Shown here: piece by piece, positions 2,976-56,507 of the stretch
How positions within the stretch are numbered: position 1 is the stretch's first letter
Layout: every line of letters starts with the position of its first letter
Source of the DNA: Eutreptiella sp. 'Long Island Sound 2002'
Lineage: Eukaryota > Protista > Euglenida
Assembly: GCA_964036045.1 (NCBI GenBank)
Contig: OZ038378.1
Coordinates: 199,764,001 to 199,828,000, forward strand
Length of the DNA stretch: 64,000 nt
Direction: 5' to 3'
Translations under genes and position numbers: made by a program
The notes under the pieces: generated by a model
The model's database searches: none
What the model was told of the DNA's origin: nothing
Seen by the model: only the letters and a program-made list of their open reading frames with translations

Positions 2976-3572
2976 CTCCCCACCTCCCCGATTAGCGCCA
3001 TCCCGAGGTCAGGGCCGAGGTAGTGTGGCCCGTGGCGCTGCAGCGCGTCCCGGCTGGTGTGGAAATGCGTCCAAATATAAAATACATACACTCACTGGGC
3101 CTGACAGGCATTGAGGGTCTGCACGTCGGCCCTCCGCGCCTCAAACCGCTGCCTTTGAAGCGCCAAGTGCTGAGTTCTCTCTCTGGGTGTCTGTAATCGT
3201 CTCTTCCATTCCTGCCACGCAGACATTGCTTATTTTTGGGTTCCTTTGGTCTTTTTGATCTTGAACAGCTGAACAATGCCAGATTCAAGCCATTCTGAAG
3301 GGACTGGCGCGTCCCGCACGAACTAGCCAGATGCCCTGTGTGGTTTATTTCCTGCCTCAGTTTCTTCAGAACCAGTTTTCTAGCCAGCTAGCAACAAGTA
3401 ATGAATTGTTGTCTTTTGCAATGCTGAGGCATTGCAACATGTTGCACGAAGCAAACAAATTTTCATCTTCGGGAGACAATCTTTCACTATGACATCCAAT
3501 TAAAATCAATGGGAACCGGATGCGGGTGCAGCATCACTGGAAAATTGCTGTTTTTGGGGCGACAGATAATTC

Positions 3573-33369: not shown

Positions 33370-36300
33370 ATGGCTTGGAGAACTGCGAGCTACACAAATG
33401 ATCCTAGACGCTCTGGTACACGGGCGATTCCGGGCTACACAGGCCATCTGCACAACGCAAAGGATGTTTTCGGGGTCTCGGCCGGCAAAGCGCTTCAACA
33501 AGATTCCGAAGGCGTGGACCATACCACGCTAAAGAAGCCAAAACGCTCCGCGGCAAGTTCCACACTGCTTTCACCATTGGATTGTGATGGCGCAATTTGG
33601 GACCACCACTATGAGACGAGCAACCAAGCCATGACATCCGTCACCGCCGCAGACTTCGATGCCAAAAACGCGGACCATGGAAAGCAAGTCCAACCTAACA
33701 TCGTCGGCTACACGGGGCACATTCACATGTCGCACGACATTCTAGGGGCCTCGCATGACTCGGTGGTGCGTGTGTCCCAAAACGCACGCCGAGAGCAGCT
33801 TCGGAACATCAAGCCTCTTACTGAGGAGAGCCGGCCCCATTGGACAGCATTTCGGGCGGGCAACAAGACTAACCCGGCGTGGAAACAAGAGTACGCCCAA
33901 ATTCTCACTACCAGGTCATCTCACTCTTGGATCGCCACAATACAAAGGGCGGATGGGAATCTTTGCGTAAGGATAGCGCGATTGCGCAACTGGAGGACGG
34001 TCGTGAATTGCTACATTGTGTCTCCAATGGGGAACGTTCCACAAACCCGCACCGTGACATTCCTCGAACCACCATTGTCGACGTCCCGATAGGGGTTGGT
34101 TGTTCCGAAGCATCCCCTTCCAACCAAACAATGTCAAGAAGTGTCCGTTTTTTCGTCAACGCTTCCGAGACGAATTCATCCATTCAGAAAAAATGAGCTT
34201 TTTTGCAAGCATAGCATCAGCCGGAGCAGCCCTGACAGCCGGAGTAGCCCTTGACGAAGCAAAGCGGGAGCAACCCTTGAGCAGCGCCAAATATAGCCCA
34301 ACCGCAAGGCAACAGCAAGAAACCAGCAGCGGAATTTGATCCGGCTAGCCTCCTCTGCTCTCCAGAGGCATAGCTACATAAATATGCACCACGGGGAAAA
34401 GTTGAAACCCACATAATACTTCGCGGCAGCATCACATGCCGTGCCCTGCGAGTCATGTCAGAGGTCCAAGTGGCGCGCACGCGGTCGGGATGAAGTTGGT
34501 TCGAATCCTGGCCATGCACAAGTGTGACGGTACTAGATGTCTTCGAACGGTAGTGGCCATCATGGCTCCGTGATGCCACTGACCTGGCCGCAGTTTTTTT
34601 TCAACATACCCCGTGACAGTATACCTGAACACGCGGCCTCCAACCCTGACCCCTTTGCCGCGCACTGCCCCCAACCCCTCAACCTTTCTCCTCTCCATTC
34701 TTCCTAGCCCTGTGCCCACCAGCTGTCCCCCCGTCCCCCATCATTGCAGACCCAATCCGAAGAAATCGGAGATGACCCCCGAGCAAGAGAACGCCGTCAT
34801 GACGTTGAAGGAAAAGATGCTACAAGAACAAATTAAGGCCGCAACGGACGTTTTGGGAACCACGACACCCCACCCGATGACACCCACGAGCACGCGCTCT
34901 CCGCTGATGTCGGCGCCACGCGAGACCTTTACGGAGAGCGTCAAGGAGCATGCCATGATGACCCTCGCGGGACCAGAAGACGAGCGCAGCTACACTGGGC
35001 ACTTCAGTAGTGCACTGCCAAGCAGGAGGATCGTGGGATACACGGGGCACCTCCGCGGGACCCAAGATACTATTGGTCAGAATTTTGGCCGCGTGGAGCG
35101 CCTGACGGACCCTCATGACAGGCCGCGGGACCCGCCACATCCGCTCGGGCAGCGCTACCAGAACGCTGCGCCACCGGGCCCCCCCATCAGCCCCCAAGTG
35201 AAGCAGCTGGTGCAGAAGGCGTCCAAGCCGACTCCCGCTGGTGTCCCGATCATCGACACCGTGAAAACCAAGATCATGCAGCGGGTGTGCGATGGCCGCT
35301 GCGTGCGTGCGGGCGGGCGGGCGGGTGGCCGTTTCTCGGTTTTTGCTGCCCACTCCCCCCCCCCCCCCGCGCCGTCTATGGTTCACACCCCCTCCCTTGT
35401 TCGCTGTCCCCCACTTTTATGCCGGCACGACACTAAAATGATGGACATCGCCGCCCACTGCACAACCTGCAGCCGGGTAAAGAGGGACGATCGCCTGTCC
35501 AACCATGAGCTCATGCACCCAGAGACAAAACCGCACACATGCACGCTCCGCTAACGCGAAAACGGCACCAGCAGGAACACAGGCCGCAGCGGCCGTCAGA
35601 ACGCAGCGACCCGACGCAGCACGCGAAGGGAAGAACAGATGACTGTCCAGGGCCCCATAAAGAAACAGCAACCCGACAGAATGTCACACAGGGAGAGCTT
35701 GCCAGAGCTCGATACATGCCTCAGCTCCTGTTGATGGCTGCGGTACCCAGGGCATATCTGCCCGGAGCCCTGTTGTACCTTTCAGCCAACTCGCATTCGG
35801 TGTTGCGGCAAGCCGCACGGCATGGGCAATGCATCGCTGGGCGTAGTGTATGTGACAACCGTGTTGGGCTCGCGTTGCGCAAGGCGTGTTCCCGAGGTAC
35901 GGCGCCTGGAACGCGGATCGTGTCACATGTTGACTCCTCGCCCGCTACTTTTCACTGCTTTGCACCTTTGAGCGCGGCCGTGCCACCTTCATCGTGCCCC
36001 TACAAAATCGTGCCAGCAAAAGAATGTGGGTGTGCTGTTTTGTTTCCGCTTGCAGTGGGTGAAGGGGGTGCAGGGCTGGGCAGGGCTGGGCAGTGCATAC
36101 ATCTCGAGTTAGCACCCAAAGGCCGTCCCGCCATTCGTGCTGCGCGGACGTGTGCAGGGCGGCCGCAACGGTTTCCGATCCCTTGTCCGCGTTCTGCGGG
36201 TGCTGGATGACGACGGAAACAAGAAGTTGAGCCGCTACGAACTGCTGAACGGCCTCAACACGTACGGCATTCATCCGAGTCAGCTGGAGCTGGACGAGCT

Positions 36301-39300
36301 TATGATCTTCCTCGACCCCGATGGTTCTGGGCAGATCACTGTGACCGAATTTGCGCGGGCCATTCGCGGCGAGATGAAACCTCCGCGGCGGGCCCTCGTG
36401 CTGCAGGCGTACCGGCTGCTAGACGAGAACTGCGACGGCTCCGTGACGCTAGGCGACATTCAGAACCTTTACGACACGTCCAAACACCCGGAGGTACGTA
36501 GCACCTGAATTTTTATCAATTTTTATCCTCACATTTGTATCGCAACCCTGTGACCTGCAGTAGTGCACTCGCATTCTTGCCATGGAAACATTTTCGAACA
36601 TCCAATGAGCCTGCCACTCGTGCGCAACGTACTACATGGGGTGGCGATCGCCCTGATCTCCGATAAGGAGCTCAGTGGGTTGGAGATGATGGTGCTGCGG
36701 GCAGGGGGGGGGGGGGGGCGACCCACCTCTCCCGCGCCACAGAGCTCGTCTTTTCCGTTCTGAAGAAACACACAGTGGAAGTTTTCCATAAAACCTGAGG
36801 TTTTGAGGGAGGGGGGGGGGGGGCACCCGCGAAGCGCACGCTACCCGCAACCAACAAGGAACGCGCCCTGCGCACGCGCGACCCACGGAGTGGGGGAGCG
36901 ACCGGGACAACGCGTGGAGGAGCGGGGCACCTGGGCCTCACGCACACGGAAACACAGCCAGGCAGGTCGGGGACGGCCTGAGGACGGGGGTGTGGGGACA
37001 GCAAAAACAGTCAAACGACCCCCGCAACAACCAGCACAATTCCAATACGCCAACTACTGGGCGCCGCTGACGCTTAAACGGCACATCCCGCCACATCCAG
37101 CACAGCCCCAGCACACCAACCACTGGGCTCCGCGAACGCGGAAACGACACCAGCAGGAGCACCGGCGGCAGCGGCCGACAGAAAGCAGCGACCCAACGCA
37201 ATATGCGAAGGGAAGAACCCCGTAAAGAAACAACAACAAGACGGAATGTCACACAGGGGCCAGTATTGAGGGTGACCTGTGTCCCGAACCCCCCCTCCCA
37301 TTTACCCATATGCCTGTCCTCTGTTGAGCTTGATGTTATTACTGTGAGGGTGTCACATGTTGACTCCTCGCCCGCTACTTTTCACTGCTTTGCACCTTTG
37401 AGCGCGGCCGTGCCACCTTCATTGTGCCCCTACAAAATCGTGCCAGCGAAAGAATGTGGGTGTGCTGTTTTGTTTCCGCTTGCAGTGGGTGAAGGGGGTG
37501 CAGGGCTGGGCAGGGCTGGGCAGTGCATACATCTTCTTCCAAAACAAAGGTCTACAACATGCTTCCACACTGTGTTAAAAAAAAGAATCAGTTTCGCAAT
37601 TTCGATTTTGGAGTTGTTGAGGCTAAAAGCTGCAAAAATTGCGGGTTGTGCCGCTAAACAGACTGCACATGGCAACTTTTGGGGGGGCATGGCCTTGGCT
37701 ACACGGGCCTCCTGGTCCCCATGGGTGCGAGAGTACCCAGATTGACACCAAATGATTGCAACCCGCCAAACCCAATTTCCAGCCCCAATCTAGGATGAAA
37801 CCACATTGGCTCTTGCCACCACACGCAGGTGCCTCCAAAACCTCCAAGAACTGCCCCACAGCTGGAACACGTGACCCAAGGAGACAAGTGAATATGAGGA
37901 GGATGCTGACCAGAAAGTTTCTTGATAAATTGGGTATTTAAAATGTAAGAAACTTTGCTGGTTGGTGTCCTCCTCACGAATACTCCACTCCTTGGGACAC
38001 CCTAGTCCGGCTTTGGGGCCTCTTAGAGGCTTTGCAGGCACCTGAGAACATGCATTGTATGTTTTCCTTGCACGATGCTCCGACAAGGGCTTGTGGGCAA
38101 ACGTTGTGGTGTGTCACTGTCACCGTGTGCCCCTGTGACCAGACCCCCACCTTCCCTGCACCCCAAAAATTTGTGCACTGGCGATTAATGATGTTGGAAT
38201 GATGGAGAATTTTGGGCCTATTTTGGGCTCACAAAACTTCCCCCTGAGACCTGTTCCCTCCCAATGCTGTAATATACAATAGAGGAAGCCATTTTGATCA
38301 TTTCATGCAACAACACTGGACCTCTGCTGAAGCCTAGCAAAGGCATGGTCATGGTGCATCCCTGGACACGGGCCATCATAACCAATCACTGTCGCTGCCT
38401 GCACACCCCTATCCCCACCTGCAGACATCCTTGCTACCACCTGCTCCATCCTTGCCAGTGCCCATACATTTTATCACTACCCACACATGCCCCACCCTCC
38501 CCACTGAGGGATGGCTTGCCCTGCCCGCTGCTTTGGCGTGTCTGGGGGCAATGGGCCTGAGTGACGATTTACCACACGATGCATGCATTTGTTTCATGTT
38601 CTTTCACACAGTGGTCTGTTGGACTGGAAGTCTTCAGGGCCCGCTTGTTGTTGTGCCTCTGGTCGGCTTACCCTTTTGCATGGTTTGGACGGGCTACACA
38701 AAGGTGGCTGCAAGATGGTGGTGTATTAGGAAGCACCGTGGTTCATCCCCAGCACGGAGGGAGGGCAGGGGGGCCGGGAGGCAAAAGGCGTGCTGCAGGG
38801 GGGGCCGATGGGCATGCCGTTTGTTTGAGGACCAGGCTTCTTGGCAACCATCCCCCGTGGACCGACCATTGCTGAGCCCATGCACCCACCCACCCACCCA
38901 CCCACCCACATCAGAAAAAATCTTCGGCAGCGAAACCGAGTGTACCGAGGGCCTTCTAATTAAAAGGGATGGCCAAGAGAAAGAGAGGTGCACAGTGCAG
39001 ATCAAGCGCCCTCCTGCCCCCAACAGACGGGAGAAGGAACAGGTGGTGTTTCTAAAGACATCAGGCCGAGGTGTGTGCATTCACGTGGCCCTGTCCTGCC
39101 TGTTAGAATACCCCACCAATCTATGCAAGGCCCATGTGGGAAGATAAACTCAAGAGGGGACAAAATTCCAAACATTCGTCCCATTTGAAACCCCTTGAGT
39201 GCCGTTGCCTCCGCCCCAACACCTCCTCCCCCTTGTCACGTATATGCTAATCACTAATCACCCCATTGACTGGCCGTGACCAGACCCTCTACACCTCACC

Positions 39301-39893
39301 CAGTCAGATGGGAGGAGTACACATGGGGTACGGAATGGTGACAAGACAGGATATCGCCATTCGGCTTTACTATTTCACCCCTGCAATCCCCCCCCCCCTC
39401 CCACACACACACCATGCGCACACACGTGCATGCACCCCCGCCCCCCGCCCCCCCATACATGCACCGATGAGAAAGAGAAGGAGAAGGAGGATCGGATGAT
39501 AGTGGACCATATCAAACGACTTCTCAGGTATTGGCTGGCGAGAAGACTGCCAAAGAGGTGCTGCAGGATTTCACGGCGGGTTGGGACAAGAACCAGGACA
39601 ACCAAATTACGGAGAGGGAGTTCTGCGACTACTACAACGACATCAGCGCCGGCATTGATGACGACCAGTACTTCGAGCTCATGATCCGCAACGCGTGGCA
39701 CATCAGTGGGGGCGAGGGTGCGGCGGAGAATACCAGCTGCCGTCGTGTGCTCGTCATTCACACAGACGGCTCAGAGACGATCGAAGAGATAAAGAACGAC
39801 CTCGGCATTGGTGCCCACGACAAGGAGAAAATGCTGCAGAACCTTCTAGCCCAAGGGGTCACAGACATTAAGCACGTCCGGCCCTATGCATAG
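33370..39893 (+). CDS. GYTGH-repeat plus calcyphosin-like EF-hand protein, 593 aa, join(33370..33914,34750..35284,36158..36493,39528..39893)
   Basis: Repeats IPGYTGH, IVGYTGH, SYTGH, IVGYTGH. Four EF-hand loops (DDDGNKKLSRYE, DPDGSGQITVTE, DENCDGSVTLGD, DKNQDNQITERE). Calcyphosin-like HPEV..GEKT, YFELMIRNAWH and RRVLVIHTDG. GT-AG introns in phases 2,0,0; 1782 nt. The intron 1 donor (GTCATC) is weak, so extra exons there are possible. Confidence 0.85.
35530..35692. repeat. Repeat family A, short copy (intron 2)
   Basis: Reverse complement of about 23789-23940. Confidence 0.8.
35920..36104 (+). repeat. 185-bp block duplicated at 37350-37534
   Basis: GTGTCACATGTTGACTCC...GCAGTGCATACATCT; the two copies differ at 2 positions. 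Confidence 0.95.
36850..37260. repeat. Repeat family A, long copy (intron 3)
   Basis: Reverse complement of about 23789-24200. Confidence 0.85.
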
Positions 39894-42801
39894 GCCATTG
39901 CCCCAACAAACCTGGTACATTCCGGTACTGAAGGCCATTGTGAGACGCACTCGCCAGTGGCTTCCGGGGGTCGTGTGGCCCGATCTGTCAGTTGTAGCCC
40001 CATGTGCTCTTAATGCATCTCCTTTGCTTGAACATATACTTTGGCACCTCACCTCCTCCTGCCCCTTTCACTACCGCACAGGATTATCCCACAATCTGCC
40101 ATTCCCACACACATTGCACCGTGACCGCCCCCCCCCCTTTCCCGGCGTACGCCCCCCTCCCCTGCTTCAGGGTGTGCGGTGCGGCCACAATGGTGTTGAT
40201 GGGAAACGGTAGTAAGTGTCCAGGATTGCCCCCTCCCGCGCCTGTATTTGTTTCTCTTCCATGTCAGTCTCCTCTCCCCTCCCCTATCCCCGTTGATTTG
40301 ATGATGTAATTCTTTACCACATTTACTCGGCAGTAAGTTTCAGCACAACGCCGGCTGTTCAGGGGATGCCTGTCGGTTTCATCCGCTAATTTCCCAAGCA
40401 CAGCCCATCGCTCCCAATCCTGAGGGTGCTCAACCCCAACAATGGGCTAGTCCTCATGCGGAGGTACATAGCACTTAAACTTGTTTGGCAGGTGTACCAG
40501 AGCTGAGCTGACACCCGCCTGACGAGGACAGCAACAGACTACACCACCGCCATCACCAAAACAGCAACAACGAGAAACACGAAGCAGAAACAGATTTTGT
40601 AACGGTTGCGGACACGCTGGCCATCGCGCCAGGCACGTCTGGGCAGCCATGGGCGCAGGAAGCAGTCTTCATTAGAAATCCTGGCTGCTTGGGTTTGGAT
40701 CTGAGTTCTGCAGAGGCTTGCAGTTCGCATCAACACTTGTTGCGTCCCATTGGAGGTCACGGCGTCACTGCCCGTGGTGCATTTCCACCGACTCATTCAC
40801 TTGCACATATTCAAACGCATGTGCATCCCAATAGACATACACGTGTTTGACAGATGAATTGAGACCCAACAAAGGAAAAGATTTTGTCCTCACACTTCCG
40901 TGAGAAAGGCTACTTGTTCATTGTGAATGCTACATGATCAGTGACGGGCGGCAAATGTTGAGACGGGGCCCGATGTGTTGATCAGGGTGGGGGGAGGCTT
41001 GGCCCAGAGCTCGGGCATCCCAACCAGATTGGAATGCTGATGATGGGCCGTTTGAGGCTCACCGAGAGCGTGTGACACCCTTCGGTCCGTGATCCCGGTC
41101 TTTTGGGCAGGAGCGGCCTGCGGTCTCTTTTGAGAGTCTGGGCCTCAGGCAGCAAACCGCATCCAACCCCCTTTCGGTTTGTCAATGCGGCGTGTGTTGC
41201 CTTGCCCTCGATCGCGCAGGCGCGACTTCGCTTGTGGTTTCAGGGACGGACAAGGCCAGGGGTTTTTTTTTTGTTACGATGGCAAGGCAATGTGGGTGAC
41301 ACGCCCTCGGTCAGGCGTAGTGCACCGTGTTCATGCCAACCCTAACCCAGAGGCGCTGGGATGCGCTGCGGTTGCAGTTGCGGTGCATTCCTTCGGGGCT
41401 GCAGCGTGCATCGCATCGTGGGGGATTGTGTGGTGCGCAGTTGCCGTCCACCACATCAATTTGTGGTACATTTCCATCAACATAACCTCTTCCATGTCAC
41501 TGTACAGCCCAATGTGTCTCCCTCGTTCACTTCGTGTCCATGTGACGCAGTGCTTTGCGCTGGGGAAGCAGGTTTCGAGGGGTTGCATATCCCAGTCACA
41601 TGGTAGTGTAGCCACCGATGAAGTACCTGTCAGGCCTGGGCTTAGTCCATCCAGCCCAGCAGCCTAGCAGAGCTGCTTGGCCCCAGTGGTCAAAACGTGA
41701 CAACAGATAAGGGACGACGATAAGAGCAGGCCAAGTGAGGTTCCTTCCGTTGTTGCCCCATCCGAAATGGAAAATAGGAATGTTTGGAAACGGAGACGAC
41801 GCAGAGAGACGGTCCAAGAGGAAGTCCGAAATTACAATTTGGGCCCAGCCTGATGATACGACGGTCGTTCATCAGCGACATCGTGGTGTAAATAGTTCGG
41901 AGATGACACATGCTATCGTGGTTGGGGAGTGTGGCTGGCTGTGTTTCAGAGCTTCCCGTTTGTGGCACAAATGAGCATGCTCAATCACGGATGAGCACGA
42001 ATTTGGCTGATTTTCGCTTTCTCGTTCGCAAAGAATCATGGCTAGTCACGAATACAAATTCTGGTGACAGGAGATTATTACAAACAATCACACACATAAA
42101 TTGACAAGAATTGGTACGCTTTTGGCAGCAGTGTGATGGCCGTTTGTATGCTGCTGTCAGCCCTTTCCTCTACTTTTCAGTTCCAGTTGAGCACTCTTTT
42201 AGCCTGCCCGGGTACATTGATCGACAGAAGCAAATGTCACCATGTGTGCTGCAGCAGTAGTTCCGCACACGTTAAGCGTGATGTGGTGCCGGCTTGTCAA
42301 GGGTTGAGACACATGTCCAACGCATTCCAAATTGGAACCTGTCGCTCTTGTTTTGTGTGTTTGTGTATTCACGGGTAAGATGTGTCATCCTTTGAGGTTT
42401 GGTTGACCCCATACCACATTCACAATGTGCAGCTTGGGGTCCTGAGTGCGCCACAAGTAATCATGAACAATCAAGAAAAATCACAAATGCCAATACATCT
42501 AAATCGCCAATACATCTGGTGATGAAGGGTTGGGAAGCTTTGCTGTGTTGCCAACGAAGGGATCTGCCCACTCAATAAAACGTTGCCACGGAATCGGGTC
42601 CGTTGTGCTAAGTTGCGCACACGCTAATGTGCACTCGGGCTGCACCTCAACAAAGGCAATTTTGAAGGTGAGCCAATGTCCTGCCCGCCTGGCTATCGCA
42701 GTCGCACACTCTGTGGTGCAGGTACATGTTCCCACAAAACAGTCGCTGAGCCCCGAGGTTTAGCCCTTGCAGTTGCGGACCCACCCACTGGCCCAGGCGC
42801 T

Positions 42802-45800
42802 ATGGCCTCCGGGCGGGATCCGGGGTACACCGACGATGCCACGTCGGCGGATGAGCTGCTGGATCAGGCCAAGATCCTGACGCAGGCCCTATCAGAGAAG
42901 CCCGCTACGGTGGCTGTGCTGCTCTTTCCAAAGATCCACATGCTGGTGGTGCAGGAAGCCGACCGGTTGTTCCGGGAGCGGCATATCCGGGTCTACATCA
43001 CAGGCACCGTCACGCCGGGTTACGAACAGGGCTCCGCCTTCATGCAATTCGTGATGCTCTACCACAAGGTGGGTTGCGCCCCTCCCCCACTCTTTTACAC
43101 CCCCCCTTTTGTTGTATCCCGCTTGTCCTACCCCCCCCCCCCCCCTGTTGTTGCATCTCTCAGCTCGCTTTTTGTACCCCTATCCCCCTTCGTGTACCTC
43201 CACTTGTTGTTACAGGGGAGGGAAATTTTTCGGGAGGGTAGAATTTCGCGGGAAATTTTCGCCGTTAAGAAACGTGGCGAAATTACCCCTGCCGCGAAAT
43301 TTTCGAAATGCAGGTGAGAATTCAGAAACGTGCACCAGTGTACCAGGCGGAGGGAAAGTACAAAGATGTTTTTTTTTTTCAACATGCAGTGGTTGTGTGA
43401 CTGGAATGCATTGGAATGCTGTGTTGCCCAAGATTTTGAAAGTGCCCACCAGGAAATAAGAGGAACCATCAGGAAATAACAGCAAGTTTCAGGATTCCCG
43501 GAGGCGGCGAAATTTTCCCCGTCCAAATTCATCCCTGTCGACATTGTCCCCTGGCAAACTTGTCCCCCCCCTTGTACGGCCACATTTCCTGTCCTCCTTA
43601 CCCCCTGTGTTCTACCCCTCCCCGCCCTTGTTGGCCCCCCACCCCACACCCTCCTGTTGTAACCCATATTTTGTTGGGGGGGCAGCCAAGGGGGCAACCA
43701 AGGGGGTAGCCTGCCGAGTGCTAGCCCTTGGAGTGGGCATTATGGTGACTTTGTCATGCGGCAGACTGCACAGTTTTTTTTTTTGCTGATGGGGACAGGA
43801 GGCCTAATACGTTTGGAGTTGATTGCAAAGCTGTGAATTTTTTTTGGGAAAATCCACGGGTGCAAGGATTGGTTCATTGTGGAGAAAAAGACGGGCAGCT
43901 GGTGGTGTTTTCTTTGTTGCCTGTCCCGAGTGCCTAGGTTTGTTGCTCACAGCTCCTTCGAATGCTCACAGCCCTCCGGATCCGCCTCACCAACGGTGCC
44001 GGTGCTGTGGCACCATCTTGAAGTACCTGTGTAGCATGGAGGGGGATTTGAACCTATGACCTGCCGTGCAACGCATGGGGCATATGTTTGGACCACCAAA
44101 TGCCACGGTAGGGACAAGGTGAAAAGTCATAGAGATTCACGTGAATTGGTTCAAAATGTGCACAAAATTCGCATCCACGGCGATTTTCACATGTGTGCTG
44201 GCATGTGGCTGTGAATGTGGATTTTGTGTGCATTTCATGCGAATTTCACACTCAAGTTTTTGCATCGTGCTATACTGCATGCTACGACCAGGTGATTGAA
44301 CTCTAGGGGCAGAGGTTGTTGTTGCATTTTGCAAATTGTTGATTGTGTGCACATGGGATCTTCTTTCTCACGGCCACTTCTTTCTGCTTGTGTGTTCACC
44401 CAATGCCGCGGGGAGATGGGAACAAGAGCGCTGGCCCCTTCCTTGCCGTGCAAGCCCAAACCCACATCAACCCTGGGCTGAAGTCCCTTGAGGAGTTGTG
44501 CGGAAAGAGTTGGGAGCCCCTTACACATGTCAACTCCTTCCCGAAATTGGCCAAATATGTTAACCCCCCAAAAGGAGACCACATCGCTGGCTCCACCAAG
44601 CGAGCCGACCAAATGGGACAAGACGGTGTATGGGGGAGCCTTAAGCGCAGTGCGCGTGCAGTGCGCGTGCAGTGCGCGCGCAGTGCAACTATTTGGGCGT
44701 CTGGCCGTACTGGAGACCCATGCTTTGAGATCATAGGGGCATCATCGTTACCCTGTTGCGTAGGTTTTGATGCTTTTTCCACATTGGGGATATAGCATTT
44801 TTGGAATTTCACCCAATTTCACCCATTTCCACCCTTTTTCACACTTTATCTCTATTTGCAAGGGCTATTTGGACCATGTCTTTGTGCAGGATACTACCCA
44901 TCTCTTTGAATTGTGCTATGCCTGTGATTCCAAGCCAAGTCGCATTTGAATTCGCCATCAAATTCTTCGTCCGGCTGGTCGCATCAACTTACGAGGGTTG
45001 ATGTGGCTGGTGAAGCGAAAGACCCGCCAGAGGGTGAGTAGTTCAACTCCGAATAATCTCGTAGCGGAAATTGCCTCCGCGGGGCTGTCGCCGCAACGGT
45101 CGTCGTATTATGTCGACAAAGGTTTCGATGCACATACGAAAGGAGGTACCCCCGGCCGACTCCCCCTCTACATTAGAGGATGTTGAGGGGGGCAACCAAT
45201 ACGCTGTTCATGGCTGTTCGAGATGTGCATGATGTGTGTTATGTGAAGGGAAGGTAGTTTGCAATTTTCTTGAGCTGGGGCAGTTTGGGTCACCTAATTC
45301 TAAGGGCGTTTCCAAGGGGCGTGCCTAGGGGCTCTTCTGGGGGAACATAGTCTAAAAGTAGCGCGCAGTGCGCGTGCAGTGCGCGCGCAGTGCGCGCGCA
45401 GTGCAAGGATTCCCCCTATGCGTAATGGTGCCTCCAGTTGCTTCACCTATCGGGGATTGAGGCCCAATAACTCACACCGCTACTAGCAATGGGTGTTACG
45501 TGGCGTGGCGTGCACGGCACCCTCCGCCAACTTGCACAACCTGCGGCTCAACTGTTTGCAGCGGAGGATGGGAACAACACCACCATCTACAGTGCAGCAT
45601 GCCCCCTACCAGCCCGGCTGCAGCACTTATACGAGTGCCGACCTATTGCGCCCATAGATGTACAACAACCGAGACCCCCTAAGTATCATTGGTTGCCGAT
45701 AGCCGTGGACGGCACCAAAAGGCACGAGGCCAGCTACGTGCACTGTACAATAGGGGCTAGTACTAGTCCGGATGAGCTTGCCTATTGGTGGCTCATTGGG

Positions 45801-48800
45801 GGATCAGAGGAATGGGGCACGTTGTATGCAGCTGCTGTTGATTTTGACCGAGAGCTCGCTGATGCTAGTAAGGTTACCGTCGTTGACACGGCTGGGGAAG
45901 GCTGTGAGCCCCTTTTTCTTTTTATGTGCCGATGGGAAGGCACAGATTTTGCTAAGTGGGTGCAAAAACTGGAAGGCTGAGTCCCCACATGTCAACTGTG
46001 TGCTGGGTATGCGGTCATTACGCACACATATAGGTATACGCAAAGACGCGCTGAACGTATGAGCGAACACTATTGCGCGTGTACGTTTACATGTATAAGC
46101 TTGTAGACGTACAGCCCTCCGAAAACCTTAGATACTACGACCGCTGAAGGACGAACGCTGCAGGATGCTGCCTGAAAGTGGCCAAAGCACAAGAGGAGGA
46201 GTGTACAGATTTGTGGTAGATCACAACACTGAGCCTTTTGGCATCGTTGTAGCGTTATGCCATGTATTCGGAGACATGCCATCATGCCCGTTGTCAAATC
46301 ATCTGCCCCCCCTTTTCCTGGGCCAGTGAAAGACCGCTGCACCTAAGAAGCTGGACCATCCACAGTGAGCGGTTTTCAGCTTGGTAAAGTCACCAAAACG
46401 ACGGGCATTCTGCACGAGACCTGCGGAACCGCCCCCTATGAGTAGGAACTCTCTCAACAGCAGACGTTCCTTCATCTCTTAGGTCTTCCAGGCGAAGATC
46501 GCAGAGCTTTTCGCGACACTACAGGCGTGTCGGAAGGCCGTCGCCCATGCCAATGCCACAGTGCCGGAGATGGAGCGGTGGCTGAAGATCCAGCAGCTTG
46601 CAGAGATGGAGCAGGAGACTCTCGTGGCGGATTGCCTCCTCTATGCAGCTGCCGTGACATACTTTGTAGCATTCCCTCGGCCGATGTACGCCCACCTGCT
46701 CAGCAAAAGCCGCGCACTTTGCAAGGCAAACCACCTGACTTGCACGGATTCGGACGGCTTCCAACTCGCGCGAGCCCTTGGGCTGGGCGGCTTCCGTTTC
46801 CTCGACCCTGAGGTGGAGCTACTGGGTACCATGGGCCTGCCTCATACTGACCCGCACACCAGGTGTGTGTGTGCACATGCACGCTCAGCAGCTTCACAGT
46901 GCCTGTTTGTCATGTTCATCGTGTGTGCGCACGCATGTGTGTGTGCCCGTGCGTGCACTGGCGTGTTTCTCAGGGTCAGGCTTTCCACTCCAACGCCGTG
47001 AAAACTTCTGGTTGTTATGATGCAGATATTCCGGTTGCAGTCCTGTTATGAAAAGGAAGGCCACAGATGTGCACAGTTTTTGACACTCCTGTTTTCAATT
47101 TCAAACTCAGGGTCTAGATCATTGATACTCGAAATGCAGGCCAGGCTGCCCCCCCCTCCCTGCGCAAGCACGGGCTTGTCCAAGCAGGGCGACCCCATCT
47201 GACCGTCGTTTTTTTCCGGTTTTTTTCCGACCGCAGTTTCTATGGTCAGAAATGTAACGTGACGCGGTTTTGCTCCGATTGTAGAGAGAAAAGGTGGCTG
47301 GATCATGCTTGTGGTAGTTCCTCCTGCTCATACCAACATTCTGCTTGCAACTGCGCTGTTTGTTTTGATGCATTTTTCAGCCATGGATGATGTTGCTATC
47401 GCTGGCATGGCTGTTAGGTACATCTGGTCCACCGGTGAACATGTGCCCGTCACTATTATTGGTCCTTCTACTCGTGGAGATGATTCTTTTCATGTGAAGT
47501 ACCTGCGGAATGGGCATGAGATTGAGCATCATGCTCCTTTGCACTGTGTCCTTTTTCCAATCCAATCCAATTGTGATCAGGGTAAGGTATGGGCAGGTTC
47601 TCGCTACGTACATTCTTTTGGTACTGCGTGTCGTGCGCAAGCACAGCCTTGTCCAAGCATGGGGGCCCATCTGACCGTTGTACTCCCGATTTTCAGCGTG
47701 CTTGCACAAGGTGGGGGGTACGAAAATGAGGTCTTGGAAACCATCTGTGTCAATGGAAACAAGAGGCATCTTGTTGGTGCTCCTCTCAAACAATTATCGT
47801 GAATGTCGGCCTTGATCCAAAATTCCCAAAAGTTCCCGAAAAATGTGGTGTGCATATCAGTCTTGCATCCCAGAAGCAAATTCCATTTATTCCTACACAT
47901 GGTACACACATCTATCAATGCTGTCCACCCAAGGCCGGCCCCAAAAATTTTGGTAGGAATGGAGGTGGGAGCAGATGTGGGAGCGGATGTGGGCGCAGAG
48001 GGGGGAATGGAGGTGGAAGTGGAGGTTGAAGTGGAAGTGGGAGTCACCACCGTACAGCCCACACGCCGCCTGCCCAGGCTGCCTGTGTGAGGCCTTCTTA
48101 CCAGTTGTGAAATGGTAGGCTCCTCTCACCAGTTCGCTTTCCTTGTTCCCTGTGAGGCAAGCTCCAGGCTCTGGCTTGCTGGTGTCTTTTTTCGCCTTTT
48201 CTGTACTGGGAGTTGCTTGCTTCATGTCTGTAAGGGATGTGGCGGTCGCTGTGGAGCTGTTGGCTGGGCCCAATGGCGCTCGGTGGCCCTTCATACTGGA
48301 CCCTCTGGGCATCTTCGTCAAGTGGCTGCAGGCGAGCCTCCGCTGCAGCGGCGCCAAAGTGCTGCAGCTGGCGCAAGACCCCGTCCAGAGCATCACAGAC
48401 CTCGCCCAAGCTGCCCAGGATGGGCTTCCGGTGGTGCTGACGGGCGTAGGCCACATGTTGCCCCCACCGGTGCTTCCGTTCCTTGACCGCGCCTACATTC
48501 GCACGCACGGCAAAGTGAAGCTCCCGTTCGCGGTGCCAGTCGGCGGCACCGAATGCGCCGACGTCCCGGTGGCGAGCGGCTTCATGCTGTTCCTCGTGTC
48601 CACTGCACGGCACACTACGGGCCTTCCGAGCGCAGTGTTTGCCCTCACGAGCCCAGTGTGGGTGGCGCCGTCCGCCGGGATGCTGGGAGCCGTGTTCCTG
48701 CCGGCAGTGCTGCAGCTCACCGAGCCAGCCGTCGCAGCGGATCTGGGGGAGCACGCGACTGACGTCGCCACGTACAGTGCGATGCTGCGCGACGCGGACG

Positions 48801-51800
48801 CGGAGTGCCGCGTGGCAATCGCGGACCCCGGTGCGCTAAAGGCCGCGCGCGCCCGGTACGTGCTGCTGGACTCCAAATGCATGCAGGCTGGCGACCTCAA
48901 GGCCCGTGGAACTGTGATCCGCGACGCCTACGTCCCGGTTGCGGAGCTGCTGAGCCGCCTGTATCTCGTGGCCTACCACGGGGGCCGTTGCGGTGCACCG
49001 GAGGAATTTGTCGAGCTGTTGGGCGCCGGGGCCGCCTCCCACTTATTGGCCGAGGCAGACACCGGGGAGGACCCGGGCCAGCGGGCGATGGCGGCGGGCG
49101 CTGGGCTCACGGAGGCCGTCCTCCAGCACTTCGGGTCCAATTTCGTGCTCACGAGCGCGGCGGCCGTGCGTTGCTTCCCTGACCCCGACCCCGATGCGGT
49201 AGAGGCCCCGGTGAGCGATGAGATCTTTGCGCTCGAGGGCACCGGCAGCGACAAGCAGTGCGTGCAGTTGACCGTGGTGGACCTGATGGACGTGTTTCGG
49301 CGCTTTCCGGGGGAGATCTCCGACGTCAAGATGGACGCAGGAACGCTGGGGGTTATGCGCGCGCAGCTGCAGGTCCCACTCCATTCTGCTGCCACCACAC
49401 GCCGCACCGGACCACGCCACGCCACACCACAAGCCGCCCCTTCACACCCTGGTCCTGTCCCAAGTGTCGACCATTGAGTCTCTGGATTGCCAGAATGAAC
49501 CTGACTTTATAACAAGTGACGAGGGCTCTGCAATGGAGTTTAGCGCGGATGTTAGCTCAACTAGGAAACGTAGGACCCAGCGATAAATCTAGCTTCCCGG
49601 CCTGACACTCTCCCCTCCCATACCTCCCAGCCTAAGGTTAACCATCAGACCTGTGGCCGATTGCATGCCAGCCTCTGAGCGCGGTCTCGTGGATATCTGA
49701 AGCTGCCCCAGTAGTAACATGCAGACTGCTTTGGGTGGTCGACAAAACACGGCAGCCATTGAAAGACATGTGGTCCACGATGTGTACTTAATGGTCAGCG
49801 ATGAAGAACCCTATTGAATGAACTGCCGAACATTGCTGCATATGCATACCAGGACGTGTGTATGTGGAGTGCTTGTTGACCTGTGTGCGGCCTTCACACC
49901 CCACCCCACCACACCACACACCACCACACACCACCACACCACACCACACCACACACCACACCACACCACCAGGGGGACATCCCATCCCCCCAGCCTGTGG
50001 GCCATGCCCCGTTTGGTGGCTGCTACCCACTGCTAACGCTCCTTAGGCTGCAACCATGGGCCCGGGGAACATCCCATTCCCCGGGCCTGTGGGCCTCGCG
50101 CCTTTTTGGGCCCACTACCCCCCCTCGGCACTCCATAGGCGGCGACCTCAGGCACAGGGGGACATCCCATCCCCCCGGCCTGTGGGCCTTGCGCAGTTTT
50201 GGGTCCACTGCCCCTTGCATTGACAGTGCACCGAAGCGTATCCACTGCCCACTGCCCCAGGCAGTGTGGCAGTGCGCTGAAGGATACCCACTGCCCCCTC
50301 ACATATGACTAATCCCCTCGGGCTGGGATTGGTGCTTGGAAATTGCCTATGGTCAATGCACGGAAAAAGTGCTTGGAAATTTTGCTTCGATCGTTTCAAT
50401 ACCAAACGAGTTGTTATGTCTCATTAGAAGTTTTTTCGGGGTGATCCTAGCAAGAAGTGGTTGGGGAAAGCAGTTCCAGACATACCGCGGCACACCATCA
50501 CGTTGAAGCAATTGTTGTCTCCATGGTCCAACTAAAAAAAGTCGGTTGTGAAAACCAGAGAAGAGATGTAGCAATACCTTTGACCAAATATACATTTTAT
50601 GGGAAATATATTCGTTACAGGTGTGCAGGTGTGCAGTGGGGCAGTGCATGGAAGGATAACCCCTGCCCACTGCCCCTTGAAGCGTGGCGGTGCAATGAAG
50701 GATGCCCACTGCCTACTGCCCCATGCAGTGCAGCAGTGTACCGCAGGATCCCCACTACCCACGGCAAAGGTAATGAAGGTTGCCTGCTGCCCCCCGTAGT
50801 GCGGTAGTGCGCCGAAGGATAGCCACTGCCCACTACCCCCTTGCAGGCAATGCGGTTGTGCGCTGAAGGATACCCACTGCCCATTGCCCGTTGCAGTGTG
50901 ACAGTGCACAGAAGAATCCCACTGCCCACTACTCACGGCCCCGTGCAGTGTGGCTATAGCAGTGCACTGAAGGATGCCTGCTGCCCACTACCCCGTGCGG
51001 TGCGGCAGTGCACTAGAGGATACCCACTGCCCACTGCCCCCGTTGTGTGGAGGTGCACTACTGGATACCCATTGCCCACTGCCCTCTGCAATGTGGCACT
51101 ACCCTGAAGGATGCCCACTGCCCAGTGCCCCATGCAGTGTAGCACTGCACTGAAGGATACACACTGCCCACTGCCCCCGCAGTGCGGCAGTGTATTGCAA
51201 AATCCCCACTACCCATTGCCTACTGCAGCGCAGCATTGTACAGAAGGATCAGCACCGCCCACTGCTCCATGCACTAAGGCAACATACAAATGCCGCCCTG
51301 TTACCCACTGCCCCAAGCAGTGAGGCAATGTATAAAACCAGCCCCACTGCCAGGTGCTGCATGCGGTGCCGTTGTGTACTGAAGGAGCCCCACTGCCTAC
51401 TGCCCCCATGCAGTGCAACAGCGAACTGAAGGATGCAATGCGGCCATGTACCGAAGGAGCCCCACTGCCCATTGCCCCATGTAGTAAGGCAGTGTGCTGA
51501 AGGATCCTCACGGCCTAATGCCCCATGCAGTGAGGCAGTGTACTGAAGGATCCCCACTACCCATTGTGCAGTGTGGTGAGGTAGTATTTTGGAGAAGCCC
51601 CGTTGCCCCACCCCATGCAGTGAGGCACTAGTGAGGCACTGTACTCAAGGATCCATGGTGCCCACTGCCCCACGCAATGAGGCAATGCACCACAACATCC
51701 CCCTTGCCCATTGCCCCTTGAAGTGAGGCAGTGTAGTGAAGGATCCCCATAGCCCATTGTGCAGTGTCATGAGGTAGTGTTCTAAAGGAGCCCCGTTGCC

Positions 51801-54800
51801 CCGCCCCATGTAGTGAGCCAATGTACTGAAGGATCCCACAGTGCCCATTGCCCCACGTAGAGGCAATGTATAGAACGGTCCCCATTGCCCACTGCCCACT
51901 GCCCACTGCAGCAGTGTTTTAAAGGATTCCCTTTTATAGAATGCCCTATGCAGTAGGGTGGTGTGAAGAAGGAGCCCCACTGCCCATTGCCCCATGCAGT
52001 GTCACAGTGTATGCAAGATCTCCACTGCCTGCTAACCCATGTAGTGAGGCAGTGTACTGAAGGATCCTAGCTGCATACTAGCCCATGTAGTGCGGCAATG
52101 TATTGCAGGATCTCCATTGTCCACAGCCCCATGCAGTAAGGCAATGTATTGCAGGATCTCCACTGCCCACAGCCCCATGCAGTGAGGCAATTTACAGAAG
52201 GAGTCCCAGTGCCCATTGCCCCATGCAGTGAGGCAAGATTTTGCAAGATCCTCACTGCCCACTGCCCAGTATCTTCACTGCCCACTGCCCCATGAAGTGA
52301 GGCACTATACAGAAGGAACCCCATTGCCCATTGCCCCATGCATTGCAGCAGTGAACTGAAGGATCCCCACCGCCCAGTGCCCCCTTGCAACGAGGCAGTG
52401 TACTAAAGGAGCCCCATTGCCCACTGCCCCATGAAGTACAGTAGTGTAATGAAGGATCCCCACCACCCACTACCCACTGAGTGCGGTGCTGTACAAAAGG
52501 AACCCCATTGCCCACTACCCCATGCAATGAGGCAGTGTTCCGAAGAAGCCCCGCTGCACACTGCCCCATCGAGTGCAGTAGTGACTTGCAGGATCCCCAC
52601 TGCCCACTATCCCATTAAGTGAGGCAAACTACAGAAGGAGCCCCATTGGCTATTGCCCCATGCGGTGATGCAGTGTACTGAAGGATCTCCGCTACCAATT
52701 GCCCCATGTAGTGAGCCAGTGCTTAGAAGGTAAAGTGCCTCACGGCATGGGGTAGTGGGTAGTGGGGCTCCTTCTCTACACTGCCTCATTACATGGGGCA
52801 GTGGGCAACGGGGAGTTGGCAAGCCACTGCTACGCTGCATGGGGCAGTGGATAGCATGGCTTCTTCTATACATCGCCTCACTGTAAAGGGCGGTGGGCCT
52901 CACTGCATCAGGCAGTGGGTAGTGGGGCTCCTTCTTACCAATGCCGCACTGCTATGGGCAGTGAGCGGTGGGGCTCCTTGAGTACACATCCGCACTGCAT
53001 GGGGCAGTGGGCGGTGGGGATCCTACAATCATTGCTAAACTACATGAGGCAGTGGGTAGTGTGCCTTTTTCTCTACACAGCCTCAGTGCATGGGGCAGTG
53101 GGTGGTGGGGCTCCTTCAATACACTTCCTCATTGCATGGGGCCGTTGGCAATGGGGCTCCTGCATGCCTTGTTGCATGGGGGCAATGGGTAACGGAATCC
53201 TTCGGTACACTACCTCACTGCATGGCGCGGTGGGCAGTGGGAATCCTTTAGTGCACTGCCTCACTGCATGGGACAGGGGAGGGTTAGGTGGAATGGAATA
53301 GATAGGCCTGATACGCCCTTGCCAGTCCACGGCGATCAGCGGTGGCCGCGAGGTAAAAACCAGCCGGGGGTTTGTCTACCATTGGGGCCGCACGATCTAG
53401 CTCACCACGGCCATGGAGGACGTCATGGCCACACTTGTAGTGGCCGTGGTACTTGTGGTGTATGAGCAGCCCACGAATGACCTCCCCAGGAACACCCACT
53501 TGCACAGGCTGCCGGTGAGCCTTTCGGACATCCAAGTGCAAATGGAGCCCCACCCTTACATGCGTGCCTACAAGAGCACCCCTATGTTGCTACGCTCCAG
53601 TAGCTCCAAGCTGGCCCCACGAAGGGCCCCACAATGGTATGGCACCAGGCGCTGCTAGGGCAGCGCTATAGGGACTGGGTGTCCCACGTGCGGCACACAG
53701 TACGAACCATCATGGTCACCGGTACCCCTCGAAAAAAAACTAGCACCCGCTGTAGGAATTTTTTTCCGCAAGGAGGATTTGCATGTAACCTTCACGTTGC
53801 TACATTGTGCGCCATAAGGAAAATTTGCTTCATCTGGTAGAGTGTGAAAAATTGGGTTTGCACCCCATGTGTCTATAAATACTCAGATTTTTCAGGAGAA
53901 CTCAATAATGGATGAAAACCATATTGGACCAAATATCAATACCGTCCCTGTGCAGACAGCTGTCAGAGATGGCTTGTACCCTACTGGGTAAACATGGGTA
54001 AACAGTGCCTCTCTGATGGGAAGGACTTGCGTTCAATTCCCAGGGCTGGCAATCTCCATGATTACAGGTAGGATGTGAATGGAAATTTTTTATTTTTGGT
54101 TTTGTTGCTTTTTTGTGCTTTTGTGCTTTTGTGCTTGTCCCCTTTGTTGGAGACCCCCGAGAATGCAGGGTTATGTAGCATTTCCGCCCACTTTTGGGCT
54201 TGCCGATAAGAGGCCAGGGTCGGCGCTGCACAGCCGGAACAGACCGGGCGTCTTTGTGCCCTAAAACACAACTACCACCCATATCGGCTGAAACATCAAT
54301 GGTTACCTTGAAAAATATCCTCCTTGCACCTTCCAAACCCAAAGAGATGGGGTAGAGTTGAGGAATTTCAGGTTTGGGGGTCCGAAAAAAAATTTCGCGC
54401 GATTTTTTTCCGTACCCCCCCCCCCTGCCCTCTGGGGGTACCCCTCGAAAAAAAAGCTGTACGCCGGTACCGGGAATCCCCCCCCCCCCCCCTTGTACAT
54501 GGCCCTCCATGCCTGCACGTGCTGCCGTCGGAGCTAGGCCCCGCCCCGCGAATGCACTTGCGGGAACATTTCCGGGATAGCGCGACGCTTGACCCCCATT
54601 GGGCCCCCACGGCGGCGCCTCAGTACTTGCAGCCTTGTATGGGGCCAGGCGTTTGGTTTCATGACTTGCCGCCGGGAGCTATGACCCGCGGGGCCATCAT
54701 AGCAACCGACGCCAGCACCACCCCGGCGGGAACGGTCATGGTGCTCGCATATGAGCGTGCACCAGGGCAATACAACATTAAGGCAGCCTCAGGAGTGGGG

Positions 54801-56507
54801 ACCTGTCAAGAGGGCGAGGCCCCAACCCTACTGCTAAGCGCTTGCCAAATGGCACTGCAGAAGCGCATATTCTGCGTGGTACCAGACTCGGAGTTTGTTG
54901 TAGGCACCCCATGCACCTACTAGGAGGGCAGACATTGCATGGACGGCATACACCACTTGTATGCGCATACTGTGGGGGCCCAGCGCCTAACCTTGAAGGA
55001 CGCAATCAACATCGTGGTCACACCATCGCAGTGTATAACCACCATCAATGTGCGGGTGGACATTGCCACTAGGGGAGCCGCAGGCAGACCTTACCTGGAT
55101 GCTGTGCCGGCCTTATGCCTTCCCATGTGCGGCAAGTTCCGGCACCACTGCAAGCTGGCCCCAACGGATCCGTAGGAGTGGCTGCAAGAGCAGGCGGTGA
55201 TTCCCGCTGGGTGCAATATGAGCACTGACGGGGACAGAACTGCGGGAAAGGCCTCGGTCTGCCTCTGGACTGGTTTACTAGTGACCAACAATGGCACTTG
55301 GTGGCCCATCAGATGTGCAACCTCCCCACCATGATGGTGTTAGCGGAGCGCTCCGAGCACACAAACGTACAACTGTGCACGCATTGTGCACGCATTGTCT
55401 GCTGTGTGGAAGCAACCCGGAAACGGCCCGACATCGATGGGAGTGCCCAGTGCAATCCCATGAGTGGCGGTTGGTAGGGCCTGCACACGTGGCTAAGCAC
55501 CTCTGTGGGGCCAAGGGCGTCGTAAGTGCAAAGCCATGGGGTTGGCAGGACTGCACAATATGGGGACAGAATCTGACAGGTGCTTTGGGAGTCACAGAAG
55601 GTCTGGCTGGCCCACACCAGAGCTCGCGACGGCCTCACCCAGGCCCGCTTGGGGCCAGAAGGCACAATGGCGTGGGCGTTGTGAGACCTCCAACTGCACC
55701 AGCAGGCGGAGTGGCAGGGCGTCCCCAGGGCAGCCCTGAACTAAGGCCATTGTATGTAGGGACAGCTGTCCCCCGCCACAGGTGCACAACACACAGCACA
55801 CAGCGCGCGTTCAGACACACAGCCCTCCCGTTTTGCATTACCCGTATGCAAGACATCCCGTCCATTTGGTCACAGTGCCTTCAGCACACCACATCAACCA
55901 CACCACACCACACCACACCACACCAAACCACACCACACCACACCACACCCATTGCCACCCCCTGCCATCCCGCCTTTGCTATCACTGAAACCAGGTTTTG
56001 GAGCAGCGGCCAACTGAGCTTAAGGATTTTACGAATTTCAAGGAAACATTCGAGAAGATGCGAACGCTGCATGCGGTGTACGAGGATGAGGTAAAGGCGC
56101 TGCACGCTCAGCTGTGCGTCGCAGTGGCCAAGGACCCAAAGTCCAGCGACCACCCGAACGCCGTGAACGCAATGGAGGCGTTTGCGGTGCTGCGGGACAT
56201 GCAGAAGGCGAAGGACCCCGCAGAGCGCTTCATGCTGCAGCACACGCCGCAGTTTCTGCAGAAGCTGCACACGGAGGTGGTGGGGCTCACGCAGCGGATG
56301 CAGGACAGCAAACTTACGCTGATGGAGCAGGATTCTGAGGCAGCGCTGGTCGCCATCCATGATTATAAAAGCGAAGTGGAGCTTCTGACAGCGCAGGCCC
56401 AGATGTTGGGTGGAGCGGCCTGGCGGCTGCATGCGGTGAGCAAGGCCCTCGTTTTGTGCCGGTCTCGCGCAGATGAGCTTAGCGATACGTTTGCGTCCCA
56501 CAAATGA
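42802..56507 (+). CDS. Rearranged dynein-heavy-chain-like protein, about 765 aa, join(42802..43068,46483..46862,48235..49372,55995..56507); may extend further 5'
   Basis: KIH..V....RLF...RVYIT (AAA4 end); EMERW...LVADCLLYAAAVTYF...GLP.D (stalk base); RWPFILDPLG and IRDAYVPVAELLSRLY (AAA5); then LEQRPTELKDF...LQKLHTEV...QDSKL (tail-like). GT-AG introns in phases 0,2,0. Confidence 0.72.
44040..44113 (-). mobile_element. tRNA-derived SINE head
   Basis: Minus strand shows A-box GTGGCATTTGGTGG and B-box GGTTCAAATCCC at tRNA-like spacing; cloverleaf not intact. Confidence 0.55.
44644..45406. repeat. Two (GCAGTGCGCGY)4 arrays about 715 bp apart
   Basis: Arrays at 44644-44688 and 45359-45406 in direct orientation. 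Confidence 0.85.
45489..45980 (+). other. Unassigned 163-aa ORF in dynein-like intron 1, probably transposon-derived
   Basis: Open frame with no coiled-coil character and no recognisable motif. Confidence 0.2.
50620..53265. repeat. 2.6-kb degenerate minisatellite with an internal orientation flip
   Basis: Units of about 40-50 bp, consensus near CCCACTGCCCCATGCAGTGAGGCAGTGTACTGAAGGAT, forward to about 52730 and inverted from about 52740. Confidence 0.9.
53700..54500. mobile_element. Non-autonomous insert interrupting a LINE relic
   Basis: GGTACCCCTCGAAAAAAAA near 53720 and 54436; C-runs at the right end; inner segment related to the 60780 repeat head (GGGTTATGTAGC...CCCACTT). Confidence 0.5.
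54505..55880 (+). mobile_element. Non-LTR retrotransposon 3' half: RNase H and C-terminal zinc-knuckle-like domain
   Basis: IATDAS, TCQEGEA, VVPDSEFV and IVVTPSQ..IN.RVD (RNase H D/E/D/D-type motifs); CLLCGSNPETARHRWEC; frameshifted. Confidence 0.7.

Follow-up and report, generated by a model that had tools for sequence, protein, structure and literature searches.

The stretch of DNA analysed here, referred to as the window, comprises 64,000 nucleotides from the genome of the euglenid Eutreptiella sp. 'Long Island Sound 2002' (GenBank assembly GCA_964036045.1, contig OZ038378.1, positions 199,764,001 to 199,828,000). It contains a gene of four exons on the forward strand, which encodes a protein of 765 residues related to one part of the dynein heavy chain, namely the AAA5 module with its buttress and the base of the stalk. 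The original prediction for this locus described a dynein-like module from which the stalk and the microtubule-binding domain (MTBD) had apparently been deleted. Our analysis bears out this description, and shows in addition that the fragment is the whole of the protein.

The exons and introns are listed in Table 1. All of the introns are GT-AG, and the summed exon length of 2298 nt corresponds to 765 codons plus a stop codon, in an intact frame and with the phases in register. The GC content at third codon positions (GC3) of the four exons is 0.71–0.83 (0.82 in exon 1), compared to an overall GC content of 0.51–0.56 in the introns. Exon 1 ends in a complete codon (...LYHK) followed by gtgggt, and exon 2 begins behind ...cttag in phase 0 and reads VFQAK...EMERW...ADCLL. 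The junction of exons 2 and 3 (AG/gtgtgt ... gtaag) restores the start of a dynein AAA5 module (...GLP...RWPFILDP), colinear with the orthologues described below. Exon 3 ends at CAG/gtccca; the frame resumes in phase 0 in exon 4 and runs to a TGA, and the join (...RAQLQ/VLEQRP...) is colinear with the orthologue sequences ...AQLNVLKNRP... and ...AQVQVLRKRP.... The host genome is 2.28 Gb in size and carries dozens of dynein heavy-chain loci, some of which are intronless open reading frames (ORFs) of 4300–4800 residues. No paralogue of the present gene was found in the same genome, so that the gene is single-copy.

Table 1. Features of the dynein-fragment gene, in window coordinates
Feature	Position	Strand	Description
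Exon 1	42802–43068	+	89 codons; ATG at 42802; putative remnant of the last helices of the AAA4 small (lid) domain, with the first turns of the stalk stub
Intron 1	43069–46482	+	3414 nt; GT...AG; phase 0; GC 0.52, compared to 0.61 in the flanking exons
Exon 2	46483–46862	+	380 nt; remainder of the stub hairpin, base of CC2, N-terminal part of AAA5 up to the GLP motif
Stub tip loop AHANAT	46543–46560	+	in exon 2
E..RW motif	46567–46581	+	in exon 2
Intron 2	46863–48234	+	1372 nt; GT...AG; phase 2
Exon 3	48235–49372	+	1138 nt; AAA5 large domain, buttress hairpin, AAA5 small domain
Pfam AAA_9 match	48275–48796	+	in exon 3; 199812275–199812796 in the profile scan of the same genome
RWPFILDP	48281–48304	+	in exon 3
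Buttress hairpin	about 48716–48979	+	in exon 3
Intron 3	49373–55994	+	6622 nt; GT...AG; phase 0; mostly 46-bp satellite and (CACAC)n runs
Exon 4	55995–56507	+	170 codons plus TGA; C-terminal antiparallel helical bundle, conserved ending ...DELSDTFAS

To find relatives of the protein, we made an exhaustive HMMER search using the exon 3 product as query, followed by word searches in which the queries were the first relative and the family profile. Besides the protein itself, the HMMER search gave only two strong relatives (E values of 1e-57 and 9e-40), the next matches being ordinary dynein fragments with E around 1e-4. A third full-length protein was recovered in the word searches, together with three short fragments of environmental origin. 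The three proteins are P0002, from an MMETSP euglenid transcript (754 residues, complete ORF); P0010, from Euglena longa (GGOE01000613.1; 768 residues, complete ORF); and P0003, from Euglena gracilis (EG_transcript_4446; 687 residues, 5′-partial). All three sequences are derived from transcripts, and orthologues of the gene are therefore expressed in three other euglenids.

The three orthologues are colinear end to end with the four exons in the window. The identity to P0002 is 51% for exon 1, 54% for exon 2, 37% for exon 3, and 33% for exon 4, and exon 4 is 33%–36% identical to the C-termini of the orthologues as a group. The start methionine of exon 1 is shared by both of the complete orthologue ORFs. 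In the MMETSP transcript, an in-frame TGA occupies nt 2–4 and no ATG precedes the start codon at nt 89, from which we conclude that the N-terminus of P0002 is real. Every orthologue is continuous across the junction of exons 1 and 2 (...LYH[KR]-[VIL]FQ.K...) and across the join of exons 3 and 4. It follows from this continuity that there is no hidden stalk exon, and that the fourth exon belongs to the gene. The in-phase splice from exon 1 to exon 2 that was originally proposed is thus correct, and the transcripts of the three orthologues contain no additional stalk-coding sequence at this junction.

The relationship to dynein was established by comparing the window exons one at a time, with the complete orthologue ORF P0002 serving as a proxy for the fold of the whole protein. 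The Pfam family AAA_9 (PF12781), which represents the dynein AAA5 module, has a gathering threshold of 27.4 bits; exon 3 (35.9 bits), P0002 (55.6 bits), and P0003 (33.6 bits) all score above it. Exon 3 also matches solved axonemal dyneins, and exon 2 aligns in phmmer to the end of the second stalk coiled-coil segment (CC2) and the start of AAA5 (8glv_JG 3132–3232; human DYNC1H1 3462–3540). When the family was compared using hhalign to the AAA4-to-AAA5 regions of four ordinary dyneins from the same genome, family positions 120–481 were matched with a probability of 98.9% and an E value of 3.2e-17, in the order E..RW motif, AAA5 large domain, buttress, and AAA5 small domain. Language-model neighbours consisted of ordinary dynein fragments only. 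These results confirm the predicted homology to dynein.

The family profile matches 66 solved dynein chains, with the single-headed inner-arm dyneins at the top: these score 62 bits, compared to 47 bits for cytoplasmic dynein-1 and 28–40 bits for outer-arm chains. The high scores of the inner-arm dyneins suggest an axonemal ancestor, and on this comparison of profile scores the ancestor of the family was probably an axonemal dynein heavy chain of the inner-arm type.

The structure of P0002 was predicted using AlphaFold2 from an 18-row alignment, giving a mean predicted local distance difference test (pLDDT) score of 78.3 and a predicted template-modelling (pTM) score of 0.64. A Foldseek search with the model gave dynein heavy-chain motor structures for all of the best 50 matches, with a best E value of 9e-14. 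Alignment using VIA-align gave a Z score of about 29.6 and a root-mean-square deviation (rmsd) of 3.9–4.2 Å over 471–482 residues, in agreement with a dynein motor fold. Residues 3 to 555 of the model superpose on residues 3066 to 3890 of human DYNC1H1; the model uses 552 residues where the human protein uses 824, and the difference is the stalk. In place of the stalk, the model has a stub consisting of a helix at residues 79–109, a loop at 110–115, and a second helix at 116–148, with pLDDT values of 80–94. The two helices of the buttress are predicted at residues 378–407 and 412–444.

The assignment of exon 1 is less direct. The best hhalign match of the N-terminal 124 residues, which is weak (E value of 0.008, probability 5%), falls on the final helices of the AAA4 lid and the initial turns of the first coiled-coil segment (CC1), and MAFFT places the segment at the same position. 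Taken together, a weak but correctly placed profile match, the MAFFT placement, and the structural alignment of the orthologue model suggest that exon 1 encodes the end of the AAA4 lid. The superposition provides the best support for reading it as a remnant of the AAA4 small domain.

The extent of the deletion can be measured between the LYH anchor at the end of AAA4 and the E..RW motif. This distance is 29 residues in the family and 299–313 residues in the four ordinary dyneins of the same genome, close to the values of about 30 and roughly 300 given originally. The buttress, which had also been described as shortened, is indeed shorter than the canonical one, but only modestly so: it spans 81 residues compared to 91–92, and the missing 10–11 residues are at the tip of the hairpin. 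No Walker A motif, either as G....GK[ST] or as GK[ST], was present in any window exon or in P0002, P0010, or P0003. The Pfam MT family (PF12777, cut-off 24 bits) has no match in the window exons; on P0002 it scores 13.1 bits, below the cut-off, and covers only positions 292–338 of the 344 in the profile. Of the dynein ring modules, the window exons and the complete orthologue ORFs gave a match to AAA_9 (AAA5) only. Compared to a complete dynein, the protein therefore has no N-terminal tail, linker, AAA1–3, AAA6, or dynein C-terminal domain, and is without most of AAA4 and about 270–280 residues of the stalk, including the MTBD.

Without a P-loop, any other AAA module, or an MTBD, the protein cannot hydrolyse ATP, form a ring on its own, or walk. 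The original description of a non-motile, stalkless fold derived from dynein is therefore right as far as it goes, given the 29-residue stub and the lack of a Walker A motif and of other ring modules; however, it understated the case. The complete ORFs of 754–768 residues, together with the in-frame upstream stop in the MMETSP transcript, make it clear that the fragment is itself the whole protein, rather than a dynein heavy chain that has lost its stalk. In AAA+ rings, each small domain forms a unit with the large domain of the following module, and the two move together. It follows that the family has kept a natural rigid block and not an arbitrary piece of the ring.

The C-terminal segment encoded by exon 4 was modelled with AlphaFold2 together with the three orthologous segments, and is predicted to be a four-helix antiparallel bundle (pLDDT 87.8). 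Its best match over the whole length is a bundle from the tail of dynein-1 (8pr1_A 1152–1330), with a Z score of 11.4, which lies in the range common for generic helical bundles, and an rmsd of 3.2 Å for 162 of the 170 residues; the Foldseek match to this bundle has an E value of 0.32. Searches of exon 4 with Pfam, phmmer, hhalign, and an ESM Atlas shape search gave no signal, and the faint hints of sequence similarity to the dynein tail map to mutually inconsistent positions within it. As for the idea that exon 4 is a segment of dynein tail, the junction of exon 3 to exon 4 is right, while the tail origin is unproven.

The four family members thus share an architecture consisting of the putative lid remnant, the 29-residue stub, AAA5, the buttress, and a C-terminal bundle ending in ...DELSDTFAS. 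A maximum likelihood tree calculated from the AAA5/buttress region groups the four proteins as a clade with 98/98 support and a long stem, and with the topology (MMETSP,(window,(E. longa,E. gracilis))), which, as judged from these sequences, is the branching expected for orthologues. The named relatives all come from euglenids, and with the window species the family spans at least four euglenid lineages; as far as these searches show, it is euglenid-specific. The overall identity is 37%–41% between distant members (41% and 37.5%), 65% between E. gracilis and E. longa, and 16%–22% to canonical dyneins. The most conserved part is the stub hairpin, with 56%–67% identity between distant species and 80% for the E. 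gracilis/E. longa pair; identities in the buttress and the AAA5 small domain are lower, at 19%–45%. Exon 2 belongs to the region of highest conservation in the family.

We note that the environmental sequences P0006 and P0014 (ENA metagenome contigs, 427 residues) represent a dynein fragment with a long CC2 and a Pfam MT score of 23.4 bits. In the AAA5 tree they branch next to the stub family as its sister (98/97); the branch is very long, and they could represent either a stalk-bearing relative or a long-branch artefact.

The known proteins closest to the family are canonical dyneins, best matched by single-headed inner-arm chains (Chlamydomonas chains in 8glv, Leishmania 9y6s_7C, and human DNAH6, DNAH12, and DNAH2). 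The family has in common with these the AAA5 large domain, the E..RW, GD.LL, and RWPL.IDP motifs, the buttress, the AAA5 small domain, and the presumed last helices of the AAA4 lid, in the same order and with the same fold. It differs from them in its length (765 residues compared to 4000–4800), in having no nucleotide site, and in its novel C-terminal helical bundle. Laboratory constructs with truncated or replaced stalks, such as the 'MTBD truncation mutant' (PDB 3vkg) and the SRS-fusions 8fd6 and 8fcy, demonstrate that a shortened coiled coil is compatible with folding of the AAA4-lid/AAA5 platform, and entries of this type are among the structural matches of the P0002 model. These constructs have the whole ring and a longer coiled coil, whereas the proteins described here are natural and ringless.

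The same genome encodes a second stalkless dynein at about 145.80 Mb, some 54 Mb upstream of the window (G000:C1:145802229-145809893, loci L010–L012). Its ORF of 2555 residues contains the linker, the P-loops of AAA1–AAA4, AAA5, and AAA6, and the Walker B motif of AAA1 reads FDQFNR. Its stalk has been reduced to a short hairpin: about 60 residues, among them a Gly/Pro-rich loop, separate the end of its AAA4 lid from E..RW. The resemblance to the family lies in this short hairpin and in the shared organism; the second protein however has a complete ring, and its stub differs in both length and sequence. We considered whether the family descends from this protein, but there is no special similarity between them, and in the AAA5 tree the second stalkless dynein is found among ordinary dyneins and not as a sister to the family. 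Since it falls outside the family clade, the two stalk losses appear to be independent.

The evidence firmly supports an intact, conserved, euglenid-restricted gene of four exons for a free-standing dynein fragment, and on balance we think it probable that this protein works as a static adaptor or regulator, in line with the possible scaffold or regulator suggested originally. What has been kept is a single block of the ring, in which the presumed final helices of the AAA4 lid are followed by AAA5, with its large domain, its small domain, and the buttress hairpin that belongs to the latter. The stalk of 300 residues (CC1, MTBD, and CC2) has been cut down to a predicted antiparallel hairpin with arms of about 30 residues and a six-residue tip loop, and a helical bundle of 170–200 residues has been added at the C-terminus. 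In the mechanism that we propose, the stub hairpin, braced by the slightly shortened buttress, may have taken over from the MTBD as the binding surface; our proposal that the adaptor works through the stub is based on its being the most conserved part of the protein. The C-terminal bundle may serve for anchoring or oligomerisation, and the likeliest site is a structure of the flagellum or one associated with dynein.

A number of points weigh against this interpretation. The idea of a binding surface is drawn solely from relative conservation among four sequences, and a structural cause, for example packing of the hairpin on the buttress, could give the same pattern. Exon 1 alone has no significant match in Pfam or among PDB sequences, and its assignment to the end of the AAA4 lid leans mainly on the predicted structure of an orthologue, which was calculated from a shallow 18-row alignment. 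The transcript support comes from orthologues in other euglenids, and EG_transcript_4446 was not found in the readable E. gracilis proteome text and supplements.

A bolder version of the adaptor proposal, which we regard as possible but rather doubtful, is that euglenids have made the rigid AAA4 lid/AAA5/buttress block into an autonomous protein, in which the stub is a new binding head and which would serve dyneins, or the stalkless pseudo-dynein of its own genome, in trans as a docking subunit or regulator. If true, this would be the first free-living dynein 'ring fragment' with a conserved function of its own.

A different arrangement would place the protein inside a ring, as a subunit of a split or composite pseudo-dynein in which the AAA4-lid/AAA5 block is given in trans to a polypeptide that carries the remaining ring modules. 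Two candidates for the partner would be a dynein-like protein in truncated form and the ring-complete stalkless dynein encoded on this chromosome at a distance of about 54 Mb; the latter shows that this genome has another non-canonical, stalk-pruned dynein. The position of the N-terminal boundary, within the AAA4 small domain, suits such an arrangement, as does the retention of a small(i)/large(i+1) rigid block. There is also a natural precedent for split motor domains: in Ustilago maydis the dynein motor is reportedly divided between Dyn1, the polypeptide with AAA1–4, and Dyn2, which is said to begin near the AAA4/stalk boundary and to contain the stalk, MTBD, AAA5, AAA6, and C-terminus, the two together rebuilding an active motor. 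The family starts near the same boundary as Dyn2, but has no stalk, MTBD, or AAA6. The lack of AAA6 means that at least three polypeptides would be needed to complete the ring, and a ring has no place for the appended helical bundle. The large stalkless dynein has an AAA5 and an AAA6 of its own and is not sister to the family, and no partner gene lacking AAA5 was identified in a search for a partner that extended no further than the window. We therefore consider a split ring to be unlikely.

It is very improbable that the locus represents an ordinary dynein heavy chain, with exons for the stalk and the other modules missed in intron 1 or 5′ of position 42802. Two of the introns span several kilobases (3.4 and 6.6 kb), and the unconventional introns of euglenids are easily overlooked. 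However, the ORFs of at least 25 residues in intron 1 gave no match to the dynein hidden Markov model (HMM) at E ≤ 10, and none of the intron 1 ORFs inspected resembles a coiled coil, so that the prediction of no coiled-coil exon in the 3.4-kb intron, with which the continuous orthologue transcripts also agree, has held. With a full-length dynein HMM made from three of this genome's intronless dyneins, no dynein-like sequence was found in the 64-kb window outside exons 2–4. The next gene upstream is an unrelated EF-hand gene, and the complete orthologue ORFs share the start methionine of exon 1, one of them with an in-frame upstream stop. Equally hard to credit is a decaying pseudogene, a functionless fragment of a duplicated dynein gene: the low identity to canonical dyneins, the fast evolution (only 65% identity for the two Euglena species), and expression known from other euglenids only would be expected of one, but this reading is already contradicted by a 765-codon frame that is intact over four exons with coding-type GC3, by expressed ORFs of the same length and order in three other euglenids, and by a single-copy gene whose tree follows the expected species order.

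A functional protein of this kind would have consequences beyond this locus. Dynein heavy chains are usually regarded as indivisible machines of 4000 residues. In the literature we found no description of a natural, conserved, and expressed protein that consists of the stalk-base/AAA5/buttress platform alone, and nothing on stalkless or fragment dyneins in euglenids. If the protein is functional, then the AAA4 lid/AAA5/buttress block is shown to be an autonomous folding unit, and the family would provide a minimal natural system in which to study the stalk–buttress interface. It would also represent a lineage-specific layer of euglenid dynein or flagellar biology, beside the second, independent stalkless dynein. 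For annotation, the gene is a caution that an AAA_9 match on a short gene model need not mean a fragmentary dynein prediction.

The region upstream of the gene contains a pyrimidine-rich acceptor sequence (...cccttgcag) at window positions 42770–42772, 29 nt 5′ of the ATG. Judged from its sequence, this site may suit the addition of a spliced leader, which is usual in euglenids. The upstream neighbour is an EF-hand (calcyphosin-like) gene, with ORFs on the forward strand at 36113–36505 and 39471–39890. EF-hand_7 matches the first of these with an E value of 1e-20, and a weaker EF-hand remnant is found in the second. This unrelated gene, which ends near 39890, marks the 5′ limit of the dynein-fragment gene.

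Two of the introns contain repeats. Those in intron 3 lie at 49895–53161 and 55885–55949; a 46-bp satellite forms an array of roughly 3 kb, flanked by (CACAC)n microsatellites. The satellite consensus comes out in the opposite orientation from about 52.9 kb, and the array translates into long spurious ORFs on both strands. In intron 1, ORFs on both strands at 44560–44640 and at 45340–45410 give similar short peptide strings rich in Arg and Ala, which suggests a dispersed or inverted repeat. An 11-bp tandem repeat, GCGCGCAGTGC, is located at 45361–45404 within the same intron.

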